DNA of 64,000 bases from Lepidodermella squamata (taxonomy: Eukaryota > Animalia > Gastrotricha), in contig JBLDXI010000013.1 of assembly GCA_047495785.1 (NCBI GenBank), forward strand, positions 1 to 64,000, given 5' to 3'. Below the pieces are notes generated by a model that was given only the letters and a program-made list of their open reading frames with translations, ran no database searches and was not told where the DNA came from. Position 1 is the first letter of the stretch. Every line of letters starts with the position of its first letter. The position numbers and the translations under genes were made by a program. Below are positions 1,134-16,659 of the stretch, piece by piece.

Positions 1134-1176
1134 CCTAACCCTAACCCTAACCCTAACCCTAACCCTAACCCAACCC
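1134..1176 (+). repeat. Telomeric cap of PLE copy 1
   Basis: (CCCTAA)n ending in the variant CCCAACCC, directly joined to 5'-truncated element sequence. Confidence 0.95.
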
Positions 1177-1914
1177 GGGAGCATCGATTTAGTCGTCGCC
1201 CCAGCTGCCAGTGTTTCACCGATAGCCAGCGTCTCACATCCCACGGCCGTCGACCTGGATCTTTTTGCAATTCCCGGTACACCCGCACTTACAGAACCAC
1301 CAGTACGTAATGCGGACTTGGAGACAATGGCTAATGAGAACATCGATGTCGACGCACCTGGTACTTCATCCACTCCGATGCTATCTGTCGTACGCGAGGA
1401 TGTCGATATCGATACGCCTGGTACTTCCTTCCCTCCGATGCTAGTTGCTGTAGCAGCTCCAACTCCACAAACCGGCGGCAAGCGCGTGCTGTCGTCTACT
1501 TGCTTCTTTCGTTCGCCAAGTGTGACTTCCTCGGGTCTGGCAAAACGAACCAAGGCTAATGTCACATGTGAATCAGATATCGAAGATGATGACGATTTCT
1601 CCGTCACCTCAACACCGACGACATCCCAAGTTTCGAAGGCCCACAAGGTCAGTGGATCGCTACGTTACGAAGCGGAAAAACGGTTTTGGTTGGAACTCGT
1701 GGCCGATCCGGCTTGGATCGGCAAAGTGTTGTTCGTCAAGCCGGCAAAGGGTGAATTGATTTGTAAAATCAAGAATTGCGGTTTCGGCTGCGTGAAAATA
1801 GGTGGTATGATCGGACACTTCACTGCCACGCATCCCTCAATGGCGCCGACGGCTACACGGCTGGCTGACCTGCGCACAGAGAAAATGGCACTTCACTTAT
1901 CGAAGCTGAAGTAA
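1177..1914 (+). pseudogene. 5'-truncated zinc-finger ORF of PLE copy 1
   Basis: Same translation as the C-terminal part of 7091-8164 (GSIDLVV...LHLSKLK), apart from one A/V change. Confidence 0.85.
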
Positions 1915-2468
1915 CTGAACAATTTCCTGATGTTCTGTTGTCTTTTTTCTTGTTGATGAATGCCTGTAGGCGAGAAATTGTTGAATTGTTGAACGATGAA
2001 CACAGGCTCTGGAATAAAATGAAATGTTGAAACTAGATTTGGCTGTCTTTTGTTATTTACTTGGTGTCAAAAAGAGTCTAAACTTGCTGTCTTATTGAAA
2101 GGTCAAAGCCAGGCAAAACCTTCACAGATGAATTTAAAAAAATCTCTTGTTTCAACGGCGGATCTCAGGAAAGTCGATACTCAGATAAATTAAAAAAGGA
2201 TCACCCTAAAAAACTAATGGGTCAGGATAGTATGAGGCAGCCTGGGAATCATCTCCGTCTGCGTGAAGAGGGAGGGATAATGTCATAGTACTAAACGAGT
2301 ACTCAATACAGCAGGAACACGGGATTGTCAACAAGACATGTGATACTGCCTATTTGGGTCCCTACCCCAACCATATCTACATATAGGGAATGAATACTAA
2401 GATAGCGGAGTAGACAATAGAGATACTGAGGGTAGGATAACGAGACTAAAACCCGAAAATAGGGCAAG

Positions 2469-2703
2469 ATCTATCTCTATCTCTATCCCTATCTCTATCT
2501 CTATCCCTATCCATATCCCTATCCCTATCCCTATCCTTATCCTTATCCCTATCCTCATCCTTATCCTTATCCTTATCCTCATCCTCATCCTTATCCGTAT
2601 CCTTATCCTTATCCCTATCCGTATCCTTATCTCTATCCCTGTCCGTATCCTTATCTCTATCCCTATCCCCATCCTTATCTCTATCCACACCCCTATCCTT
2701 ATC
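2469..2703 (+). repeat. Degenerate hexamer microsatellite (CCCTAT/CTCTAT/CCTTAT) in PLE copy 1
   Basis: Direct read. Equivalent tracts are at ~8719-8935 and ~14093-14333, with different lengths. Confidence 0.95.
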
Positions 2704-2983
2704 TTGATCTATGATAAGGATATGATTAGAGATTGTGGAGATAAGAGGGCGGGAGAGCCGGAGGAAGGGCATATGAGTACATTTAGCATTTATTTCAACT
2801 ACTTCGAAGTTGAAAACCTATTCCGAACTTCATCCCTATTCTGGCTAGGATGACCTTGAAATAGCATGCGGCTATTATTCCCGCCAAAAGCCATGTGCTC
2901 GCCACGTGGCGCAGTAGAAAGACGGTAGCGCTGTTTATAAACGCTGCTCATTCGATTCATTATCTCTACGCTTAACAAATACT

Positions 2984-3054
2984 AGCAACTGAAGTCACTG
3001 ATGAGCCTGTTACCCCCAGGCGAAACCGGTCTGACTACTCACGGGGTTGTTGCT
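2984..3054 (+). ncRNA. Type I hammerhead ribozyme (PLE copy 1)
   Basis: Helix I AGTCA/TGACT, core CTGATGA (2998-3004), helix II GCCTG/CAGGC, GAAA, minimal palindromic helix III ACCGGT, GUC cleavage after 3031. Confidence 0.93.
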
Positions 3055-3140
3055 TTTTCATTCTAGACTGTTTTTTCGAGTATAGCCAGTTATAAATGGC
3101 ATTTTTCCGCATAATTTTAATTGTTTTATTTATAGCTATT

Positions 3141-3418
3141 GCTTCCCTATACGGGTGGCTGCCTTTTATTTTACTTCCCTATATGGGTGGTCATGGCTTG
3201 AACAATTATAGGTTATAACTGGTATTATTTCTTAGATAATTACGTGAAATAATACCGTTATATTATGGTTTTTTTCAAATTGTCCTCTCTATTTTTGCAG
3301 CTATTGCTTCCCTTTATGGGTGGCTGTTTTTAATTTGCTTCCCTGTATGGGTGGCTTTGTCCATTTTACTACCCAGACGGGTGCTAAAATTATTATAAGC
3401 TTCCCTTTATGGGTGGCC
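3141..3418 (+). repeat. Array of ~6 short hairpin motifs (GCTTCCC-N5-GGGTGGC) in PLE
   Basis: Repeated motif gcttccc(tttat/tatac/tgtat)gggtggc. Also present at ~9373-9650 and ~14772-15049. Confidence 0.85.
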
Positions 3419-3666
3419 ATGTCATTTATGCCATGTTCTCACTAGAGGCATGTCGCATTTTTGAGCGCAATTAGCGTCATCTCTACTGTTTTGCTCAATA
3501 ATAACATTGTTATGTTCTCCTTTTTAGAAGAATATTACTGAAAGTAATTACGTCCACAGCGAGATCGACTCTACCAACACCTTTGCCAAAAACTGAGGTA
3601 AATTGTGCCATTCCATTTCATTTTTAGAGATTATTTAACGATAGAGAGGATTTGTGACGTTTTCGT

Positions 3667-3756
3667 CCCTATCCCTATCTCTATCCCTATCTCTATCCCT
3701 ATCCCTATCCCTATCCCTATCTCTATCTCCGTCCCTATCTCTATCTCTATCCCTAT
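3667..3756 (+). repeat. Second (CCCTAT/CTCTAT)n microsatellite in PLE
   Basis: Direct read. Also at ~9899-9988 and ~15297-15387. Confidence 0.95.
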
Positions 3757-4003
3757 TTGTGGATTGATAGTCATTTTCATAATAGGAAAGGGATTTTCCG
3801 CTATTTTTCGAGATTAACTGCGTCTCAAGTAGCATTAGAGCTAACTGCCGGGGTGCTTAGGCTACCTGTCTGGTAATTCTCTCCTAACTAACCCTAACTT
3901 TTGAGCTCGAGTCATGAGTACGATGTGAACGAGATGCGGTTTCTCATCTCGTATTATTTGCGGGTCAAATCTTTTAAACTGTTCAATTTTCATCTTTTGC
4001 CAG

Positions 4004-6964
4004 ATGTCAGAAATGCCCGGTAAGCATAACAACCGCGGTCCCCGAAACTTCGGCCCTAACCAACAGCGCGGCAACTACAACAACAATCGTAACCAACCTT
4101 ACGGCAATAGTAACGGCAATACCAACGGTAACGGTCACGGCAACGTCAACGGCAACAGTCGAGAACGAGCCCCGGTCAACACTCTCAAGGCGAAAATCGA
4201 CGAAGCCTTCCGAATGTACCAACCGAAAGCGGCGCAAAGTGTTGACGCGCTAGATCGTGCAATCGTCATGTTCGGAGCTCTATGGCCTAGAGCCTTTGAA
4301 GTCTTTGATCTATTGTCGGGCTATAAAATCCGATGCGCCAACCTGGGTAAAGACAATGCAGTCGTTCAACAGGTTTGTACTCTAAAACCTAACTGCATTG
4401 ATAATATATCTGTATTTTTCTGATAGGTCGTGATTGCCTTAGTCGATGGAGTCATCAGTGACTATGCCCCTTTGTTAACTGAAGCCATCGACCTGGCTGT
4501 CAAGGTGGCTATGGAGCAAGAGCGATTGAAGTTAACGGCGGCACTGACTAGTCTGGCTGCCAATTTCTTGAACCTCAAGGAGGTGTACGAGACAGCCACC
4601 CAAGGCACACGTTGTTCCCTGGATGACGCCTTGTTGGCAACTTGGCGCGACGCGGACAAACGGTCTGTGGGTCTGACTGCCGACATCAAAATTACTTGGA
4701 CGCCTTGGCCAATGATGGCTACTGCACGTACCATCGGGCGCACGTTGAACACTGAAGGTCTATGTCGCGTTGCGGCATCTGTGTTAAGTCACGACTGGAC
4801 GACCGGAGGGACTGATAAAGAAACGCGCTTCGTCACCTTGCTACGCCTTACGGACGAATTCCTGGCACTCGAGTTGGCCACGAATGGGACCATCGATGGT
4901 CCTCCTACCCAGCCTGGTGCTGCTGGCACGTCCTCAGGTAGGAAAATTAGCGATTCTACTTTTTCCCTAAGTACGAACTGTTTAACATGGGCAGATTTAG
5001 ATTTCTTTAATTGCGAAGCCCTGAAAACCAATTCAAAATTCATTATTGACTTTTTATTTGCACGCCCCAGCGTATGGTACCTAACCTGTAGAATGGAACC
5101 CGGGCATCCAATGCGATGCCTTCGCTCCAATTTTCAAAACAACAAACTTTGGGTTCTTTGTCAGGAACATGCCTCTTGCTTTCACTCTGAAAAACAATTA
5201 TGGTTTCACTTGGAGAATTGCCACCTACAGGATCTCTTTATTATCGAGGACATTCCTCGGCTTACCTCGCATTTATACGGGGTTAACATTTCTCTAATGG
5301 ATAAATTACCAATCCACTCCTCGTCCCAACCAGCTTTGAATTTATCTGAGGACAATAAAAAATGGGAGAAGAAAGGTGTTATTGACCTCACCGGGAAACT
5401 ATCTATCGAGTTAAAAAACCAGCTATCCAAAGGTTTAAAATTTGTTAAACTTACTCGTAGTGATCTCCGTAATTCCATTTTTGAAGCAAAGGAAAAAATC
5501 GATGAACTCAAAGTAAAATTGAGTCGCAAATTGAGAAGAGACCTAAATTTTAAGCTCCGTAATGAGCTATCTAGTCTCAATAATGATATCCCCAACGTAC
5601 CCTCAGATGTCTGGATTACCAAGAGCGATAAGGGCAATGTAGTGGTTGCAATCGCTAAAAATACCTACTGTAAAATGGGTGAGAAATTTCTTAACAATGC
5701 GACTACCTTTCGTAAGACTGAAACTGATGGCTTTACGGAATTCAGAAAATCTATCAATGACCTCAGAACAGAATGGCTAGCCTTCTCCCCTGATACCCTC
5801 AATAAATGGAAAAAAGTCTTTGTCAAATCGAAAAACCTCCGCACGAAATTCATTTACTTTCTTCCAAAACTCCACAAAGCAGCCGATAATGAAAGTCTTC
5901 TGAAAGTAAGACCCATCACCGACGGAACTAATACCTACACCTCTCAAGCTGACAAAGCTCTGTATAAAAAATTACGTAAGGCAAGACTTAGCTTGACAAC
6001 GGTCGTACACAGTAGCACAGAGGTTCTTAGCGAAATTCGGGCCTTGAATGATAGTGGAAAAAACCTGGATGAAGCAATCATCTGCACCGCTGATATCAGC
6101 GACATGTACAACCAAATCCCCCTTTTTGAAGCCGTAGACGGAGTGGCTTCCTACCTCAGAGAGCACGATATCCTAGAACCTGTTGAAAGACGCTTAGTAT
6201 GCAAAGCCATTTACATTGTTTTGAGCTCAAGTTCTGTCAAATTCAATGACAAGTGGTATCGCCAAATTCAGGGTCTAGCTATGGGTGGTCATCTCTCCCC
6301 TTGGGTTGCTAATAATTGGCTCTACATACTTGAACGCAACCTGTGGATAATCCACTCACCCTTAGTAGGCTGTCGGTATCTTGATGACCTATTATCCATT
6401 TTTCTCAACAACCAGCGATCTGCTGAATTCATGAAAGAATACAGCCGTCTGCACCCCAATATAAAATTGGAAATTAACACTTCGGAGCATAGCGCCCAGT
6501 ATTTGGACCTTATCATCTATAAGAAAGATGGTCGTGTAGAAACCGGTGTCTACTTCAAACCAACTGATAGCCTCTCTCTACTGAGCAACGGTTCGGAACA
6601 CCCATCTCACATTTTTTCCGGAGTGATAGAATCACAAATCTTGAGATACTCCCGAATTGCCTCAACTTTCAAAGACTGGGCTATAGCGGTACTCAGCCTA
6701 TGTCATAGCCTCCTGAGAAGGGGATATACATGGACACTTGTGGCATCAACCATCAAGGGCACCTTGAAAAAATTGGAGAATAAGGAATGGCCCTTCATTA
6801 ATAAGAAACTAACAAATAAACCATACGAAACAATGCACGTCCTGCACTACGCAAAATCCCTTGAACCCGTATATAAAACCATTAAAAAACATGGTCGATT
6901 GGCACTTAAGCTGAATAAAAATAATAGAAAGCGTTTCACCAAATCTGAATTTTCAGGAATGTAA
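4004..6964 (+). CDS. PLE reverse transcriptase polyprotein (exons 4004-4372 + 4427-6964, ~968 aa), no GIY-YIG endonuclease
   Basis: PLE RT motifs: KSDKGN, YFLPKLHK, VRPI, TADISDMY, QGLAMGGHLSP, RYLDD, YLDL, VYFKPT, SEHP...SQILRYSRIAS, RGY. A 54-nt GT-AG intron (4373-4426) joins the 139-aa ORF in frame. No GIY-YIG motif is visible at either end. Confidence 0.9.
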
Positions 6965-7127
6965 TGGTTGGTACCCAGCAATGCGAGCCTATTAGCTGGC
7001 AGCCTCAACAACACGCTGATGTGAAATGATGATATTTGACTACAAATAAAAAAGAAAGGGGAATTACCACTGTCTTTTGAATTACTTTGGTTGCTAATCA
7101 TGATCGTAACTTTACTCTTATACTCAG

Positions 7128-8164
7128 ACTGGATCACCGGTAAGGAGTTTAGCTTCGGCCTCGTCATGGACGCCAAGCGATATGCCCCACCGGGTGGTTT
7201 TCGCGCCCCAGTACCATCACCAGTCACCTTCGGTCATCCGACGGTCGTCAGGCGTTCTTCGACGCCTTTGGTCGCACCGCGCCCGGCTGAAACGCCTCTT
7301 GACTCAGATACGGATAGTGACTCATCAGAAGATGCGTTGCTTATGCCTGCCAACTCGGAACAGATCAGTGTTGAACCAGCAGACCTTGATGTCTCTATCC
7401 TGAACCCGCCTTTCGATCAGGCGATCGGGAGCATCGATTTAGTCGTCGCCCCAGCTGCCAGTGTTTCACCGATAGCCAGCGTCTCACATCCCACGGCCGT
7501 CGACCTGGATCTTTTTGCAATTCCCGGTACACCCGCACTTACAGAACCACCAGTACGTAATGCGGACTTGGAGACAATGGCTAATGAGAACATCGATGTC
7601 GACGCACCTGGTACTTCATCCACTCCGATGCTATCTGCCGTACGCGAGGATGTCGATATCGATACGCCTGGTACTTCCTTCCCTCCGATGCTAGTTGCTG
7701 TAGCAGCTCCAACTCCACAAACCGGCGGCAAGCGCGTGCTGTCGTCTACTTGCTTCTTTCGTTCGCCAAGTGTGACTTCCTCGGGTCTGGCAAAACGAAC
7801 CAAGGCTAATGTCACATGTGAATCAGATATCGAAGATGATGACGATTTCTCCGTCACCTCAACACCGACGACATCCCAAGTTTCGAAGGCCCACAAGGTC
7901 AGTGGATCGCTACGTTACGAAGCGGAAAAACGGTTTTGGTTGGAACTCGTGGCCGATCCGGCTTGGATCGGCAAAGTGTTGTTCGTCAAGCCGGCAAAGG
8001 GTGAATTGATTTGTAAAATCAAGAATTGCGGTTTCGGCTGCGTGAAAATAGGTGGTATGATCGGACACTTCACTGCCACGCATCCCTCAATGGCGCCGAC
8101 GGCTACACGGCTGGCTGACCTGCGCACAGAGAAAATGGCACTTCACTTATCGAAGCTGAAGTAA
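7128..8164 (+). CDS. PLE downstream ORF: S/T/P/D-rich linker plus C-terminal C2H2/BED-like zinc finger
   Basis: Open in all copies. CKIKNC-x12-HFTATH (C-x4-C-x12-H-x4-H) at 8012-8083. It is preceded by a splice acceptor at 7126-7127 (alternative start ATG 7166) and followed by AATAAA at ~8263. Confidence 0.75.
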
Positions 8165-9215
8165 CTGAACAATTTCCTGATGTTCTGTTGTCTTTTTTCT
8201 TGTTGATGAATGCCTGTAGGCGAGAAATTGTTGAATTGTTGAACGATGAACACAGGCTCTGGAATAAAATGAAATGTTGAAACTAGATTTGGCTGTCTTT
8301 TGTTATTTACTTGGTGTCAAAAAGAGTCTAAACTTGCTGTCTTATTGAAAGGTCAAAGCCAGGCAAAACCTTCACAGATGAATTTAAAAAAATCTCTTGT
8401 TTCAACGGCGGATCTCAGGAAAGTCGATACTCAGATAAATTAAAAAAGGATCACCCTAAAAAACTAATGGGTCAGGATAGTATGAGGCAGCCTGGGAATC
8501 ATCTCCGTCTGCGTGAAGAGGGAGGGATAATGTCATAGTACTAAACGAGTACTCAATACAGCAGGAACACGGGATTGTCAACAAGACATGTGATACTGCC
8601 TATTTGGGTCCCTACCCCAACCATATCTACATATAGGGAATGAATACTAAGATAGCGGAGTAGACAATAGAGATACTGAGGGTAGGATAACGAGACTAAA
8701 ACCCGAAAATAGGGCAAGATCTATCTCTATCTCTATCCCTATCCATATCCCTATCCCTATCCCTATCCTTATCCTTATCCCTATCCTCATCCTTATCCTT
8801 ATCCTTATCCTCATCCTCATCCTTATCCGTATCCTTATCCTTATCCCTATCCGTATCCTTATCTCTATCCCTGTCCGTATCCTTATCTCTATCCCTATCC
8901 CCATCCTTATCTCTATCCACACCCCTATCCTTATCTTGATCTATGATAAGGATATGATTAGAGATTGTGGAGATAAGAGGGCGGGAGAGCCGGAGGAAGG
9001 GCATATGAGTACATTTAGCATTTATTTCAACTACTTCGAAGTTGAAAACCTATTCCGAACTTCATCCCTATTCTGGCTAGGATGACCTTGAAATAGCATG
9101 CGGCTATTATTCCCGCCAAAAGCCATGTGCTCGCCACGTGGCGCAGTAGAAAGACGGTAGCGCTGTTTATAAACGCTGCTCATTCGATTCATTATCTCTA
9201 CGCTTAACAAATACT

Positions 9216-9286
9216 AGCAACTGAAGTCACTGATGAGCCTGTTACCCCCAGGCGAAACCGGTCTGACTACTCACGGGGTTGTTGCT
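9216..9286 (+). ncRNA. Type I hammerhead ribozyme (PLE copy 2)
   Basis: Identical to 2984-3054. Predicted cleavage after 9263. Confidence 0.93.
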
Positions 9287-10119
9287 TTTTCATTCTAGAC
9301 TGTTTTTTCGAGTATAGCCAGTTATAAATGGCATTTTTCCGCATAATTTTAATTGTTTTATTTATAGCTATTGCTTCCCTATACGGGTGGCTGCCTTTTA
9401 TTTTACTTCCCTATATGGGTGGTCATGGCTTGAACAATTATAGGTTATAACTGGTATTATTTCTTAGATAATTACGTGAAATAATACCGTTATATTATGG
9501 TTTTTTTCAAATTGTCCTCTCTATTTTTGCAGCTATTGCTTCCCTTTATGGGTGGCTGTTTTTAATTTGCTTCCCTGTATGGGTGGCTTTGTCCATTTTA
9601 CTACCCAGACGGGTGCTAAAATTATTATAAGCTTCCCTTTATGGGTGGCCATGTCATTTATGCCATGTTCTCACTAGAGGCATGTCGCATTTTTGAGCGC
9701 AATTAGCGTCATCTCTACTGTTTTGCTCAATAATAACATTGTTATGTTCTCCTTTTTAGAAGAATATTACTGAAAGTAATTACGTCCACAGCGAGATCGA
9801 CTCTACCAACACCTTTGCCAAAAACTGAGGTAAATTGTGCCATTCCATTTCATTTTTAGAGATTATTTAACGATAGAGAGGATTTGTGACGTTTTCGTCC
9901 CTATCCCTATCTCTATCCCTATCTCTATCCCTATCCCTATCCCTATCCCTATCTCTATCTCCGTCCCTATCTCTATCTCTATCCCTATTTGTGGATTGAT
10001 AGTCATTTTCATAATAGGAAAGGGATTTTCCGCTATTTTTCGAGATTAACTGCGTCTCAAGTAGCATTAGAGCTAACTGCCGGGGTGCTTAGGCTACCTG
10101 TCTGGTAATTCTCTCCTAA

Positions 10120-10197
10120 CTAACCCTAACCCTAACCCTAACCCTAACCCTAACCCTAACCCTAACCCTAACCCTAACCCTAACCCTAACCCACCCC
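10120..10197 (+). repeat. Interstitial telomeric tract between PLE copies 2 and 3
   Basis: (CCCTAA)~12 ending CCCACCCC. Confidence 0.97.
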
Positions 10198-12339
10198 ACG
10201 CGCTTCGTTACCTTGCTACGCCTTACGGACGAATTCCTGGCACTCGAGTTGGCCACGAATGGGACCATCGATGGTCCTCCTACCCAGCCTGGTGCTGCTG
10301 GCACGTCCTCAGGTAGGAAAATTAGCGATTCTACTTTTTCCCTAAGTACGAACTGTTTAACATGGGCAGATTTAGATTTCTTTAATTGCGAAGCCCTGAA
10401 AACCAATTCAAAATTCATTATTGACTTTTTATTTGCACGCCCCAGCGTATGGTACCTAACCTGTAGAATGGAACCCGGGCATCCAATGCGATGCCTTCGC
10501 TCCAATTTTCAAAACAACAAACTTTGGGTTCTTTGTCAGGAACATGCCTCTTGCTTTCACTCTGAAAAACAATTATGGTTTCACTTGGAGAATTGCCACC
10601 TACAGGATCTCTTTATTATCGAGGACATTCCTCGGCTTACCTCGCATTTATACGGGGTTAACATTTCTCTAATGGATAAATTACCAATCCACTCCTCGTC
10701 CCAACCAGCTTTGAATTTATCTGAGGACAATAAAAAATGGGAGAAGAAAGGTGTTATTGACCTCACCGGGAAACTATCTATCGAGTTAAAAAACCAGCTA
10801 TCCAAAGGTTTAAAATTTGTTAAACTTACTCGTAGTGATCTCCGTAATTCCATTTTTGAAGCAAAGGAAAAAATCGATGAACTCAAAGTAAAATTGAGTC
10901 GCAAATTGAGAAGAGACCTAAATTTAAAGCTCCGTAATGAGCTATCTAGTCTCAATAATGATATCCCCAACGTACCCTCAGATGTCTGGATTACCAAGAG
11001 CGATAAGGGCAATGTAGTGGTTGCAATCGCTAAAAATACCTACTGTAAAATGGGTGAGAAATTTCTTAACAATGCGACTACCTTTCGTAAGACTGAAACT
11101 GATGGCTTTACGGAATTCAGAAAATCTATCAATGACCTTAGAACAGAATGGCTAGCCTTCTCCCCTGATACCCTCAATAAATGGAAAAAAGTCTTTGTCA
11201 AATCGAAAAACCTCCGCACGAAATTCATTTACTTTCTTCCAAAACTCCACAAAGCAGCCGATGATGAAAGTCTTCTGAAAGTAAGACCCATCACCGACGG
11301 AACTAATACCTACACCTCTCAAGCTGACAAAACTCTGTATAAAAAATTACGTAAGGCAAGACTTAGCTTGACAACGGTCGTACACAGTAGCACAGAGGTT
11401 CTTAGCGAAATTCGGGCCTTGAATGATAGTGGAAAAAACCTGGATGAAGCAATCATCTGCACCGCTGATATCAGCGACATGTACAACCAAATCCCCCTTT
11501 TTGAAGCCGTAGACGGAGTGGCTTCCTACCTCAGAGAGCACGATATCCTAGAACCTGTTGAAAGACGCTTAGTATGCAAAGCCATTTACATTGTTTTGAG
11601 CTCAAGTTCTGTCAAATTCAATGACAAGTGGTATCGCCAAATTCAGGGTCTAGCTATGGGTGGTCATCTCTCCCCTTGGGTTGCTAATAATTGGCTCTAC
11701 ATACTTGAACGCAACCTGTGGATAATCCACTCACCCTTAGTAGGCTGTCGGTATCTTGATGACCTATTATCCATTTTTCTCAACAACCAGCGATCTGCTG
11801 AATTCATGAAAGAATACAGCCGTCTGCACCCCAATATAAAATTGGAAATTAACACTTCGGAGCATAGCGCCCAGTATTTGGACCTTATCATCTATAAGAA
11901 AGATGGTCGTGTAGAAACCGGTGTCTACTTCAAACCAACTGATAGCCTCTCTCTACTGAGCAACGGTTCGGAACACCCATCTCACATTTTTTCCGGAGTG
12001 ATAGAATCACAAATCTTGAGATACTCCCGAATTGCCTCAACTTTCAAAGACTGGGCTATAGCGGTACTCAGCCTATGTCATAGCCTCCTGAGAAGGGGAT
12101 ATACATGGACACTTGTGGCATCAACCATCAAGGGCACCTTGAAAAAATTGGAGAATAAGGAATGGCCCTTCATTAATAAGAAACTAACAAATAAACCATA
12201 CGAAACAATGCACGTCCTGCACTACGCAAAATCCCTTGAACCCGTATATAAAACCATTAAAAAACATGGTCGATTGGCACTTAAGCTGAATAAAAATAAT
12301 AGAAAGCGTTTCACCAAATCTGAATTTTCAGGAATGTAA
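10198..12339 (+). CDS. PLE RT, copy 3 (N-terminally truncated, RT domain uninterrupted)
   Basis: 708-aa ORF that differs from copy 2 at only about three residues. Confidence 0.85.
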   Translation, partial: TRFVTLLRLTDEFLALELATNGTIDGPPTQPGAAGTSSGRKISDSTFSLSTNCLTWADLDFFNCEALKTNSKFIIDFLFARPSVWYLTCRMEPGHPMRCLRSNFQNNKLWVLCQEHASCFHSEKQLWFHLENCHLQDLFIIEDIPRLTSHLYGVNISLMDKLPIHSSSQPALNLSEDNKKWEKKGVIDLTGKLSIELKNQLSKGLKFVKLTRSDLRNSIFEAKEKIDELKVKLSRKLRRDLNLKLRNELSSLNNDIPNVPSDVWITKSDKGNVVVAIAKNTYCKMGEKFLNNATTFRKTETDGFTEFRKSINDLRTEWLAFSPDTLNKWKKVFVKSKNLRTKFIYFLPKLHKAADDESLLKVRPITDGTNTYTSQADKTLYKKLRKARLSLTTVVHSSTEVLSEIRALNDSGKNLDEAIICTADISDMYNQIPLFEAVDGVASYLREHDILEPVERRLVCKAIYIVLSSSSVKFNDKWYRQIQGLAMGGHLSPWVANNWLYILERNLWIIHSPLVGCRYLDDLLSIFLNNQRSAEFMKEYSRLHPNIKLEINTSEHSAQYLDLIIYKKDGRVETGVYFKPTDSLSLLSNGSEHPSHIFSGVIESQILRYSRIASTFKDWAIAVLSLCHSLLRRGYTWTLVASTIKGTLKKLENKEWPFINKKLTNKPYETMHVLHYAKSLEPVYKTIKKHGRLALKLNKNNRKRFTKSEFSGM

Positions 12340-12502
12340 TGGTTGGTACCCAGCAATGCGAGCCTATTAGCTGGCAGCCTCAACAACACGCTGATGTGAA
12401 ATGATGATATTTGACTACAAATAAAAGAGAAAGGGGAATTACCACTGTCTTTTGAATTACTTTGGTTGCTAATCATGATCGTAACTTTACTCTTATACTC
12501 AG

Positions 12503-13539
12503 ACTGGATCACCGGTAAGGAGTTTAGCTTCGGCCTCGTCATGGACGCCAAGCGATATGCCCCACCGGGTGGTTTTCGCGCCCCAGTACCATCACCAGTC
12601 ACCTTCGGTCATCCGACGGTCGTCAGGCGTTCTTCGACGCCTTTGGTCGCACCGCGCCCGGCTGAAACGCCTCTTGACTCAGATACGGATAGTGACTCAT
12701 CAGAAGATGCGTTGCTTATGCCTGCCAACTCGGAACAGATCAGTGTTGAACCAGCAGACCTTGATGTCTCTATCCTGAACCCGCCTTTCGATCAGGCGAT
12801 CGGGAGCATCGATTTAGTCGTCGCCCCAGCTGCCAGTGTTTCACCGATAGCCAGCGTCTCACATCCCACGGCCGTCGACCTGGATCTTTTTGCAATTCCC
12901 GGTACACCCGCACTTACAGAACCACCAGTACGTAATGCGGACTTGGAGACAATGGCTAATGAGAACATCGATGTCGACGCACCTGGTACTTCATCCACTC
13001 CGATGCTATCTGCCGTACGCGAGGATGTCGATATCGATACGCCTGGTACTTCCTTCCCTCCGATGCTAGTTGCTGTAGCAGCTCCAACTCCACAAACCGG
13101 CGGCAAGCGCGTGCTGTCGTCTACTTGCTTCTTTCGTTCGCCAAGTGTGACTTCCTCGGGTCTGGCAAAACGAACCAAGGCTAATGTCACATGTGAATCA
13201 GATGTCGAAGATGATGACGATTTCTCCGTCACCTCAACACCGACGACATCCCAAGTTTCGAAGGCCCACAAGGTCAGTGGATCGCTACGTTACGAAGCGG
13301 AAAAACGGTTTTGGTTGGAACTCGTGGCCGATCCGGCTTGGATCGGCAAAGTGTTGTTCGTCAAGCCGGCAAAGGGTGAATTGATTTGTAAAATCAAGAA
13401 TTGCGGTTTCGGCTGCGTGAAAATAGGTGGTATGATCGGACACTTCACTGCCACGCATCCCTCAATGGCGCCGACGGCTACACGGCTGGCTGACCTGCGC
13501 ACAGAGAAAATGGCACTTCACTTATCGAAGCTGAAGTAA
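12503..13539 (+). CDS. PLE zinc-finger ORF, copy 3
   Basis: Same as 7128-8164 with one I/V change. Confidence 0.75.
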
Positions 13540-14614
13540 CTGAACAATTTCCTGATGTTTTGTTGTCTTTTTTCTTGTTGATGAATGCCTGTAGGCGAGA
13601 AATTGTTGAATTGTTGAACGATGAACACAGGCTCTGGAATAAAATGAAATGTTGAAACTAGATTTGGCTGTCTTTTGTTTTTTACTTGGTGTCAAAAAGA
13701 GTCTAAACTTGCTGTCTTATTGAAAGGTCAAAGCCAGGCAAAACCTTCACAGATGAATTAAAAAAATCTCTTGTTTCAACGGCGGATCTCAGGAAAGTCG
13801 ATACTCAGATAAATTAAAAAAGGATCACCCTAAAAAACTAATGGGTCAGGATAGTATGAGGCAGCATGGGAATCATCTCCGTCTGCGTGAAGAGGGAGGG
13901 ATAATGTCATAGTACTAAACGAGTACTCAATACAGCAGGAACACGGGATTGTCAACAAGACATATGATACTGCCTATTTGGGTCCCTACCCCAACCATAT
14001 CTACATATAGGGAATGAATACTAAGATAGCGGAGTAGACAATAGAGATACTGAGGGTAGGATAACGAGACTAAAACCCGGAGATAGGGCAAGATCTATCT
14101 CTATCTCTATCCCTATCTCTATCTCTATCCCTATCCATATCCCTATCCCTATCCTTATCCTTATCCCTATCCTTATCCTTATCCTTATCCTTATCCCTAT
14201 CCCTATCCGTATCCTTATCCTTATCCTTATCCCTATCCCTATCCCTATCCGTATCCGTATCTCTATCCCTATCCCTATCCCTATCCCTATCCCTATCCCT
14301 ATCCTTATCTCTATCCACACCCCTATCCTTATCTTGATCTATGATAAGAATATGATTAGAGATTGTGGAGATAAGAGGGCGGGAGAGCCGGAGGAAGGGC
14401 ATATGAGTACATTTGGCATTTATTTCAACTACTTCGAAGTTGGAAAACCTATTCCGAACTTCATCCCTATTCTGGCTAGGATGACCTTGAAATAGCATGC
14501 GGCTATTATTCCCGCCAAAAGCCATGTGCTCGCCACGTGGCGCAGTAGAAAGACGGTAGCGCTGTTTATAAACGCTGCTCATTCGATTCATTATCTCTAC
14601 GCTTAACAAATACT

Positions 14615-14685
14615 AGCAACTGAAGTCACTGATGAGCCTGTTACCCCCAGGCGAAACCGGTCTGACTATTCACGGGGTTGTTGCT
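14615..14685 (+). ncRNA. Type I hammerhead ribozyme (PLE copy 3)
   Basis: Same core and helices as the other copies. Predicted cleavage after 14662. Confidence 0.93.
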
Positions 14686-15518
14686 TTTTCATTCTAGACT
14701 GTTTTTTCGAGTATAGCCAGTTATAAATGGCATTTTTCCGCATAATTTTAATTGTTTTATTTATAGCTATTGCTTCCCTATACGGGTGGCTGCCTTTTAT
14801 TTTACTTCCCTATATGGGTGGTCATGGCTTGAACAATTATAGGTTATAACTGGTATTATTTCTTAGATAATTACGTGAAATAATACCGTTATATTATGGT
14901 TTTTTTCAAATTGTCCTCTCTATTTTTGCAGCTATTGCTTCCCTTTATGGGTGGCTGTTTTTGATTTGCTTCCCTGTAAGGGTGGCCTTGTCCATTTTAC
15001 TACCCAGACGGGTGCTAAAATTATTATAAGCTTCCCTTTATGGGTGGCTATGTCATTTATGCCATGTTCTCACTAGAGGCATGTCGCATTTTTGAGCGCA
15101 ATTAGCGTCATCTCTACTGTTTTGCTCAATAATAACATTGTTATGTTCTCCTTTTTAGAAGAATATTACTGAAAGTAATTACGTCCACAGCGAGATCGAC
15201 TCTACCAACACCTTTGCCAAAAACTGAGGTAAATTGTGCCTTTCCATTTCATTTTTAGAGATTATTTAACGATAGAGAGGATTTGTGACGTTTTCGTCCC
15301 TATCCCTATCTCTATCCCTATCCCTATCTCTATCCCTATCCCTATCCCTATCTCTATCTCCATCCCTATCTCTATCTCTATCCCTATTTGTGGATTGATA
15401 GTCATTTTCATAATAGGAAAGGGATTTTCCGCTATTTTTCGAGATTAACTGCGTCTCAAGTAGCATTAGAGCTAACTGCCGGGGTGCTTAGGCTACCTGT
15501 CTGGTAATTCTCTCCTAA

Positions 15519-15710
15519 CTAACCCTAACCCTAACCCTAACCCAACCCACACTAACCCTAACCCTAACCCTAACCCTAACCCTAACCCTAACCCTAACCC
15601 TAACCCTAACCCTAACCCTAACCCTAACCCTAACCCTAACCCTAACCCTAACCCTAACCCAACCCTAACCCCCTAACCCTAACCCTAACCCTAACCCTAA
15701 CCCTAACCCC
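15519..15710 (+). repeat. Interstitial telomeric tract with variant units
   Basis: (CCCTAA)n with CCCAA, CCCACACTAA and CCCCCTAA variants. Confidence 0.97.
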
Positions 15711-16659
15711 AATCTTGAAACACATCATCAAAAAACACCCGGGCAACACTAGTAACGCTGAATCCATGTGTGCAAATTACTTCAGAGCCTTCAACATTCA
15801 ATCATTCGGCTGGTTGGATATAGCTGATTTGTTAGCCAGGTACCCTCTGCGTAAAAAATGATGACAGGGAAAATAACTGTTTACCACCGTGTACCATTTA
15901 TCAACCGTTTCAAATTATGTTCCTAACTAAATGTATGCATATTGTTGGCTCTTGGAAAGACAAAATAAAGGAAGAACTTGTTGATTTTATCAGTTGTTAA
16001 ACATTTTTACTGCGGATACGGATAAGCAAATGTAACCGAATCAACTAATAAAAGAACGTATTGTAAAGAAATTGTGTGCCTTTTTTATAAGAAAGTAAAC
16101 ACATTCCATTGTTTTCCAAACAAATTACCTTGGAGACACAGACCCAACATAGCGCGGCAAAACAGAAAAACATAAATATTCAATCGATAGTTCAAAATAT
16201 CGATAGTTGGTGCAGGTTTACAATTATTGGATGAGCAAGATACTGGACAAGTTATTAGGGTTGAGAATTGATTCCAGCTTGATGGAAACTTGAATTATTT
16301 AATTTGGTCGTAATTTCTGAAATTCTACGGTGAATTGGGATTGCAAAACCCACACCTACCCTAAACTAACCCTAACCAGAACCCTGAACCTAACCGAAAC
16401 CAGAACCTTCCTGAACGGAAGGCTAGTCGCCTAAATCGCCGTATTGGGATTGCGAAACCCACACCTACCCTGAACTAACCCTAACCAGAACCCTGAAACT
16501 AACCTTAACCAGTTCCCTCCTGAACTGAAGGTTGATCGGAAGTTTCCTGAGCTGCAGGCTAAACGGAACCCTCCTGAAGCGAAAGCCTGGACATGATCCT
16601 GATCACGTATTTGTGCTTTGAGAACATGAATGCGGACATTTCATACTCTGTAAAATCTA

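Follow-up and report, generated by a model that had tools for sequence, protein, structure and literature searches.

A putative optional intron containing the reverse transcriptase of a telomeric Penelope-like element in Lepidodermella squamata

Contig JBLDXI010000013.1 of the gastrotrich Lepidodermella squamata (assembly GCA_047495785.1) was analyzed from position 1 to 64,000 of the forward strand, and this 64,000 nt stretch is hereafter called the window. At 3899-10130 it carries an endonuclease-less Penelope-like retroelement (PLE) with an open reading frame 1 (ORF1), a reverse transcriptase (RT), and a third reading frame, ORF3, which ends in a finger-like domain. The initial annotation placed the entire RT inside an optional intron of a gene joining ORF1 to the finger. 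We consider it probable that ORF1 is fused to the RT when this intron is retained and to the finger when the RT is spliced out. The layout behind the model was conserved across seven diverged lineages, but the annotated route to an ORF1-RT protein through an acceptor at 4994 did not hold. As judged from the letters of the DNA, the splice 4937^7128 (^ marks a junction or an exon-intron boundary) is itself rather likely to be real.

Splice sites and reading frames around the reverse transcriptase

All the features that the annotation had relied on at the two sites were reproduced. The donor G^GTAGGA lies at 4937^4938, where G4937 opens a codon (phase 1). The acceptor, ...ctttactcttatactcAG, ends at 7127 behind a GCTAAT motif, and its junction reads ...ctcttatactcAG^AC at 7127^7128 (TACTCAG^AC). 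Joining G4937 to AC (7128-7129) would give GAC (Asp) and continue the frame of 7091-8164, so that exons 4004-4372, 4427-4937, and 7128-8164 would total 1917 nt, that is, 638 codons and a stop. The donor ranked first among the 39 GT sites in 4430-5237 with a generic donor matrix, which was our own heuristic, and the acceptor had the highest pyrimidine content (0.69) of the 20 AGs in 6814-7327. The reported change in base composition at the boundaries was also confirmed: GC content was 0.52-0.56 in 4500-4937 and 7128-8100 versus 0.33-0.45 between the sites, and GC content at third codon positions (GC3) was 0.58 in ORF1, 0.43 in the RT, and 0.53 in ORF3.

Seven lineages were compared, namely the window, L001, L002, L003, L008, L010 (with L011), and L012, whose RTs are 29-56% identical to each other. 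L001, L002, and L003 (40-44% identity) were found with the RT portion as query, on contigs long enough for whole elements. An exhaustive search with a profile of the ORF3 C-terminal domain (alignment A2) returned single-domain proteins besides multi-finger ones, and the contigs of the single-domain matches carried a Penelope-type RT just upstream, which gave L008, L010/L011, and L012. A word-index protein search with ORF3 found no match and missed the ORF3s of the relatives as well, indicating that it is blind at such divergence. The word-index search with the RT profile gave no further close relatives, and a scan of metagenome contigs with the same profile gave two distant loci only (24-26% identity), which were not used. 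L006 and L007, on the P0013 and P0011 contigs, are more distant PLEs; in L006, the same 221-aa product flanks the RT on both sides.

Each of the six lineages whose sequence covers the end of ORF1 has a phase-1 donor precisely there: CAG^GTAGGA in the window, CAA^GTAAGT in L001, CAG^GTAAAT in L002, CTG^GTATGT in L003, AAG^GTTAAT in L008, and CAG^GTCAGT in L010. By score, this donor came first among the GTs of the region in the window, L001, L002, and L010, second in L003, and third in L008. The frame meets a stop one or two codons past the donor in L001, L002, L003, and L008, and three of these have a short intron that joins ORF1 to the RT in frame (71 nt in L001, 102 nt in L002, and 128 nt in L008). 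ORF1 is open into the RT in the window and L010, and the donor is nonetheless kept, which the long intron would explain.

On the acceptor side, of the YAGs that follow the RT stop, the best one with a pyrimidine tract was phase-1 compatible and opened ORF3 in each of the seven lineages. The distance from the RT stop to this acceptor ranged from -4 to 220 nt, the frame relation between the RT and ORF3 varied, and the implied long introns were 2125-2250 nt. The first in-frame ATG of ORF3 stood 12 (window), 144, 42, 32, 116, 40, and 149 codons past the acceptor, preceded, in the same order of lineages, by 0, 2, 2, 3, 9, 1, and 3 out-of-frame ATGs. ORF3 was open for 116-149 codons without an ATG in L001, L008, and L012 (P = 3e-4, 5e-4, and 3e-3, respectively). 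Moreover, the GC and GC3 of ORF1 and ORF3 exceeded those of the RT in every lineage. Taken together, the ATG-less open frames, the phase matches, and the GC pattern show that ORF3 reads as a coding exon that would require an upstream coding partner, with the ORF1 donor as the only conserved phase-matched partner.

The initial annotation had also proposed that an in-frame AG at 4994 could yield ORF1-RT. The last codons of the 57 nt stretch ahead of this AG encode C-L-T-W-A, which aligned with the conserved [ILV]-[TS]-W-x-[DT] motif at the N-terminus of the RT (alignment A5), and in L001, L003, and L008 this motif lies after the short-intron acceptor. Splicing to 4994 would delete the motif; therefore, the choice in the window would be binary, to retain the intron (ORF1-RT) or to splice it (ORF1-ORF3). 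ORF1-RT of the window is most likely made from the unspliced donor, as in L010. The coordinates of these and other features are collected in Table 1.

Table 1. Features of the element and its copies in the window
Feature	Coordinates	Strand	Description and basis
Copy A	1176..3898	+	5' truncation within ORF3 (position equivalent to 7426), with a junction to telomere repeats; abuts copy B directly
Copy B	3899..10130	+	Full length, 6232 bp; copy A tail upstream, CCCTAA repeats downstream
ORF1 exon 1	4004..4372	+	123 codons; N-terminus rich in Arg/Gly/Asn
Intron 1	4373..4426	+	54 nt; CAG^GTTTGT...CTAAC...GATAG^G; phase 0; removes an in-frame stop
ORF1 exon 2	4427..4937	+	Ends at the common phase-1 donor
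RT reading frame	4937..6964	+	Continuous with ORF1 if the donor is unused; N-terminal C2H2-like finger, RT core with YLDD, thumb, no endonuclease
Proposed optional intron	4938..7127	+	2190 nt, would contain the whole RT coding region; donor and acceptor quality, same layout in L001, L002, L003, L008, and L010 (L012, acceptor side only)
57 nt "short intron"	4938..4994	+	AG 4993-4994 in frame; unsupported, 3' part encodes the conserved L-T-W motif
AATAAA	7045..7050	+	Past the RT stop and ahead of the long-intron acceptor; may be a polyadenylation signal within the intron
Putative 3' end of the long intron	7093..7127	+	Branch-like GCTAAT (7093-7098, ~30 nt upstream), pyrimidine tract, CAG acceptor; sequence reading and AG scoring
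ORF3 exon (putative)	7128..8164	+	345 codons; Ser/Thr/Pro/Asp-rich and disordered at first, followed by the conserved C-terminal domain
ORF3 C-terminal domain	7898..8161	+	~90 residues, W...C-x4-C-x12-H-x4-H; C2H2/BED-like finger predicted between helices; alignments A2 and A4, profile search, structure model
AATAAA	8263..8268	+	~100 nt past the ORF3 stop; possible mRNA end
3' tail, CTCCTAACTAACCCTAAC	10110..10130	+	Complementary to the G-rich telomere strand; continues into CCCTAA repeats
Copy C	10198..15529	+	5' truncation at the position equivalent to 4823; retains the donor (10312) and the acceptor (12502)

Proposed mechanism and alternative explanations

In the proposed mechanism, PLE copies would be added head to tail onto a (TTAGGG)n chromosome end, and the sense transcript would carry a single strong donor where ORF1 has its last codon. 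When this donor is unused, translation would run from ORF1 straight into the RT and stop at 6964, and this retained form of the RNA might end at the AATAAA at 7045. When the donor is joined to 7127, the intron would be removed with the whole RT, and ORF1 would be fused in frame to the finger exon across a junction reading TCCTCAG^ACTGGATC. The two products would share the N-terminus of ORF1, which is RG-rich and then probably helical, and have mutually exclusive C-termini. Considering that all DNA copies retain both introns, the template copied at telomeres would be a fully unspliced RNA that includes the 54 nt intron. Five of the seven lineages had AATAAA or ATTAAA past the RT stop and before the acceptor, versus ~1.4 estimated from hexamer densities, and such signals suggest that polyadenylation inside the intron may compete with splicing. 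We infer by analogy that splicing may balance a nonenzymatic ORF1-finger protein against ORF1-RT. With AATAAA sites at 7045 and 8263, mRNAs may end well before the 2 kb 3' region, which holds a ribozyme-like motif and the telomere-complementary tail.

Several observations weigh against this mechanism. The acceptors were chosen with the frames known, and a naive rule, the first AG inside the open ORF3 frame, gave phase 1 in five of the seven lineages (P ~0.05). A search of public runs returned a single match, a DNA-like run of unknown kind kept as contigs, and no RNA run with the stretch; compared with 3905-8350, the DNA-like run gave one near-identical contig with copy-C variants, without joints and without an intron-less DNA copy. 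No single chain combining ORF1 with the finger domain was found in the database library, which consists mostly of genomic gene calls that ignore introns. In addition, ATG 7166 is the first ATG after 7127, 39 nt on and with none upstream, so that an independent start after trans-splicing would be possible.

This last point belongs to the main alternative explanation, in which ORF3 is a separate cistron: 7127 would receive a spliced leader in trans (or mark the 5' end of a subgenomic RNA), translation would start at ATG 7166, and the donor at 4937 would be idle or a relic of the short intron of the relatives. The ATG of ORF1 itself, directly behind a strong acceptor (ttttgccag^ATG), fits such a leader. 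However, the first in-frame ORF3 ATG of the relatives lies 32-149 codons on, behind one to nine out-of-frame ATGs, with the frame open up to the acceptor. A separate cistron would also leave it to coincidence that the phase fits the ORF1 donor in every lineage, and L010 retains the donor without needing an ORF1-RT intron. We regard the separate cistron as unlikely. Still less probable is a donor whose sole role is to link ORF1 with the RT by way of the short intron at 4938-4994, with ORF3 expressed by reinitiation, an internal promoter, or a non-AUG start. The AG at 4994 is in frame, and L001, L002, and L008, in which ORF1 would otherwise stop, do have short in-frame introns at this place; but the 57 nt stretch of the window encodes the conserved L-T-W motif at its end, the frame of the window is open when unspliced, and L010 is without any short intron. 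ORF3 also has no conserved start, and the RT and ORF3 have no consistent frame relation that could serve readthrough or frameshifting.

GT and AG dinucleotides are common, and our matrix was a generic one, so the splice-like sites might have arisen by chance beside a decaying or unrelated ORF3 without a role. Against this, the three almost identical copies here have an intact ORF3, as do six diverged lineages in which its domain is conserved, and the donor was conserved in position and phase; we consider chance very improbable. Two other ways of connecting ORF3 were rejected. A donor at the C-terminus of the RT feeding ORF3, which would give an RT-ORF3 fusion, was in phase only in L001 and is not conserved, and readthrough or frameshifting from the RT into ORF3 met frame relations that differ between lineages and extra intervening stops. 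The retention-or-splicing model may also be extended to a switch used throughout a possibly undescribed clade of telomere-attached PLEs, with at least seven lineages from several unrelated public samples, in which one donor fuses an RNA-binding ORF1 to the RT or to a BED-like finger. The finger form might then target DNA or RNA, for example, five CTTCCCTNTAYGGGTGG motifs in the 3' region or telomeric DNA, and bring the ribonucleoprotein to chromosome ends. This extension is tentative and, as a whole, somewhat doubtful.

Protein modules, element class, and the chromosome end

"Zinc finger" is a fair description of the predicted C-terminal domain of ORF3. In alignment A4, H57 was invariant, C39 and H62 were kept in at least nine of ten sequences, and R-x-D-G stood ahead of the first His; the second Cys (C44 in the window) was invariant in all four A2 sequences, though not in the A4 alignment as it stands. 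AlphaFold on A4 predicted a small beta-beta-alpha unit between helices (predicted local distance difference test score, 88). The Pfam zf-C2H2 model matched one of four members at E = 0.003, below the cut-off, and Foldseek against the PDB gave nothing significant for the domain (best E 0.6), with C2H2 and BED fingers in the weak rows. A language-model (Atlas feature) search placed zf-BED clusters first (0.84-0.87), which we take as a lead only. Pfam gave no match at threshold for ORF1 or ORF3. Apart from multi-finger host-like proteins, the ORF3 domain was found only beside these RTs; therefore, ORF3 would belong to the element. ORF3 was intact in the nearly identical copies of the window as well as in the six other lineages.

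ORF1 starts with an Arg/Gly-rich segment in all lineages, and its remainder is poorly conserved; in L001, an intron inside ORF1 was likewise predicted. The strong acceptor-like site at 3980-4006, ttcatcttttgccAG, ends exactly at the ORF1 ATG at 4004, and is a candidate for the spliced-leader or 5' untranslated region intron acceptor of the element mRNA. In the relatives, a TAG stands 3-24 nt ahead of the ORF1 ATG.

The large ORF gave a weak Pfam RVT_1 match and contains LPKLHK and YLDD motifs. The nearest RTs outside the clade are 600-830 aa long with 23-29% identity (E down to 6e-27), and one of them, a beetle protein with RVT_1 and a weak GIY-YIG match, has the canonical PLE architecture. 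The assignment as a PLE-type RT is based on the similarity and architecture of these relatives. [quoted passage not shown] The N-terminus of the RT bears a finger of its own, C-x5-6-C-x9-12-H-x4-H (5140-5215 in the window; also in L001, L002, L003, L008, and L010); therefore, a CCHH finger would be brought by both alternative C-termini of ORF1. Profile-profile comparison of this finger with that of ORF3 gave a probability of 24%, too weak for a claim of duplication.

Self-comparison and inspection of the junctions indicated that a chromosome end occupies the left third of the window; there, CCCTAA repeats are followed by three head-to-tail copies of one 6232 bp element. CCCTAA arrays lie at 394-1168, 10124-10189, and 15523-15706. 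All three copies terminate in CTCCTAACTAACCCTAAC (their shared end also read as ...CTAACTAACCCTAAC), and copies B and C then pass into telomere repeats. The elements of L003 and L008 likewise end in telomere-type repeats. Since copy C retains donor and acceptor, it would derive from unspliced RNA. The copies are 98.8-99.3% identical to each other, and B and C differ at just 7 positions in 4823-8164, with most other differences in the repeat-rich 3' region; therefore, the family would be young. The 3' region, with its long degenerate hexamer tracts, contains 63 of the 70 differences between B and C (~90%); these tracts (CCCTAT / CTCTAT / CCTTAT, at 8700-8930 and 9895-9985) are one letter off the telomere unit.

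A 17 nt motif, CTTCCCTNTAYGGGTGG, occurs five times per copy, at 9374-9648, 3142-3416, and 14773-15047 (15 matches versus 0 expected), and could form a protein-binding or small-hairpin array. A hammerhead-like core, CTGATGAG-stem-CGAAAC with a very short helix III, is readable in the 3' region at 2998-3035 and 9230-9267; Rfam assigned the motif to no family at gathering score or at E<=1. A similar core directly follows ORF3 in L001. The subtelomere goes on at 15700-36360 with other noncoding repeat units of ~5.7 kb, which are 91-99% alike and are each terminated by CCCTAA repeats. Ahead of the first telomere array, the stretch at 17-395 is 99.7% identical to 16016-16395.

Comparison with known systems

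No elements are related more closely to telomerase than PLEs, and chromosome ends are extended by the forms that lack an endonuclease. How PLE proteins are expressed and kept in balance is largely unexplained. Endonuclease-less PLEs have been described as two-ORF elements (PMC6431247) with conserved introns (PMC8557442), and the retention of introns in DNA copies is a known puzzle of the class (PMC3846280). Athena of bdelloid rotifers and Coprina of fungi, protists, and plants resemble the present element in their PLE-related RT without GIY-YIG and an ORF1 upstream of it, in 5'-truncated head-to-tail copies between telomere repeats with a telomere-complementary 3' tail, and in spliceosomal introns kept in DNA copies and, as a candidate here, a hammerhead-like motif upstream of the tail (PMC8557442, PMC6431247); the likeness is one of anatomy. 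Unlike them, the element of the window has a third conserved ORF with a CCHH finger past the RT, apparently spliced to ORF1. Reviews and full-text searches, with the primary Athena/Coprina and Terminon papers outside their scope, gave no downstream exon joined to ORF1 over the RT. If the model is true, it would add a third conserved protein module to endonuclease-less PLEs, and the RT as a conserved optional intron would give retained introns a function.

The ORF3 domain shares with BED and C2H2 fingers an upstream aromatic residue, the C-x2-4-C-x12-H-x4-H spacing, and the predicted beta-beta-alpha unit, whereas neither a Pfam model at threshold nor a significant structural match ties it to them, and the likeness is a lead only.

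Functionally, the optional intron of Ty1/copia elements comes nearest. In Arabidopsis EVD, an optional intron and a choice of polyadenylation give a GAG-only subgenomic RNA ("shGAG"; Oberlin et al. 2017; PMC5580714). As in EVD, the element of the window would have an mRNA for a nonenzymatic protein besides a full-length RNA encoding the polymerase. The copia intron is centered on the protease, and the spliced RNA ends prematurely and encodes GAG alone (PMC5580714), whereas the intron proposed here would extend over the entire RT, and its use would bring in a new C-terminal exon, so that two fusions would have one N-terminus, in another class of retroelement. The resemblance extends beyond copia. 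For the env and accessory mRNAs of retroviruses, one upstream donor is either left unused, giving the genomic and polymerase mRNA, or joined to an acceptor beyond pol. Retroviral spliced products normally begin at their own AUG, whereas here the frame itself would cross the junction. If true, the use of the RT as an optional intron would mean that these PLEs had converged on splicing strategies like those of copia elements and retroviruses.

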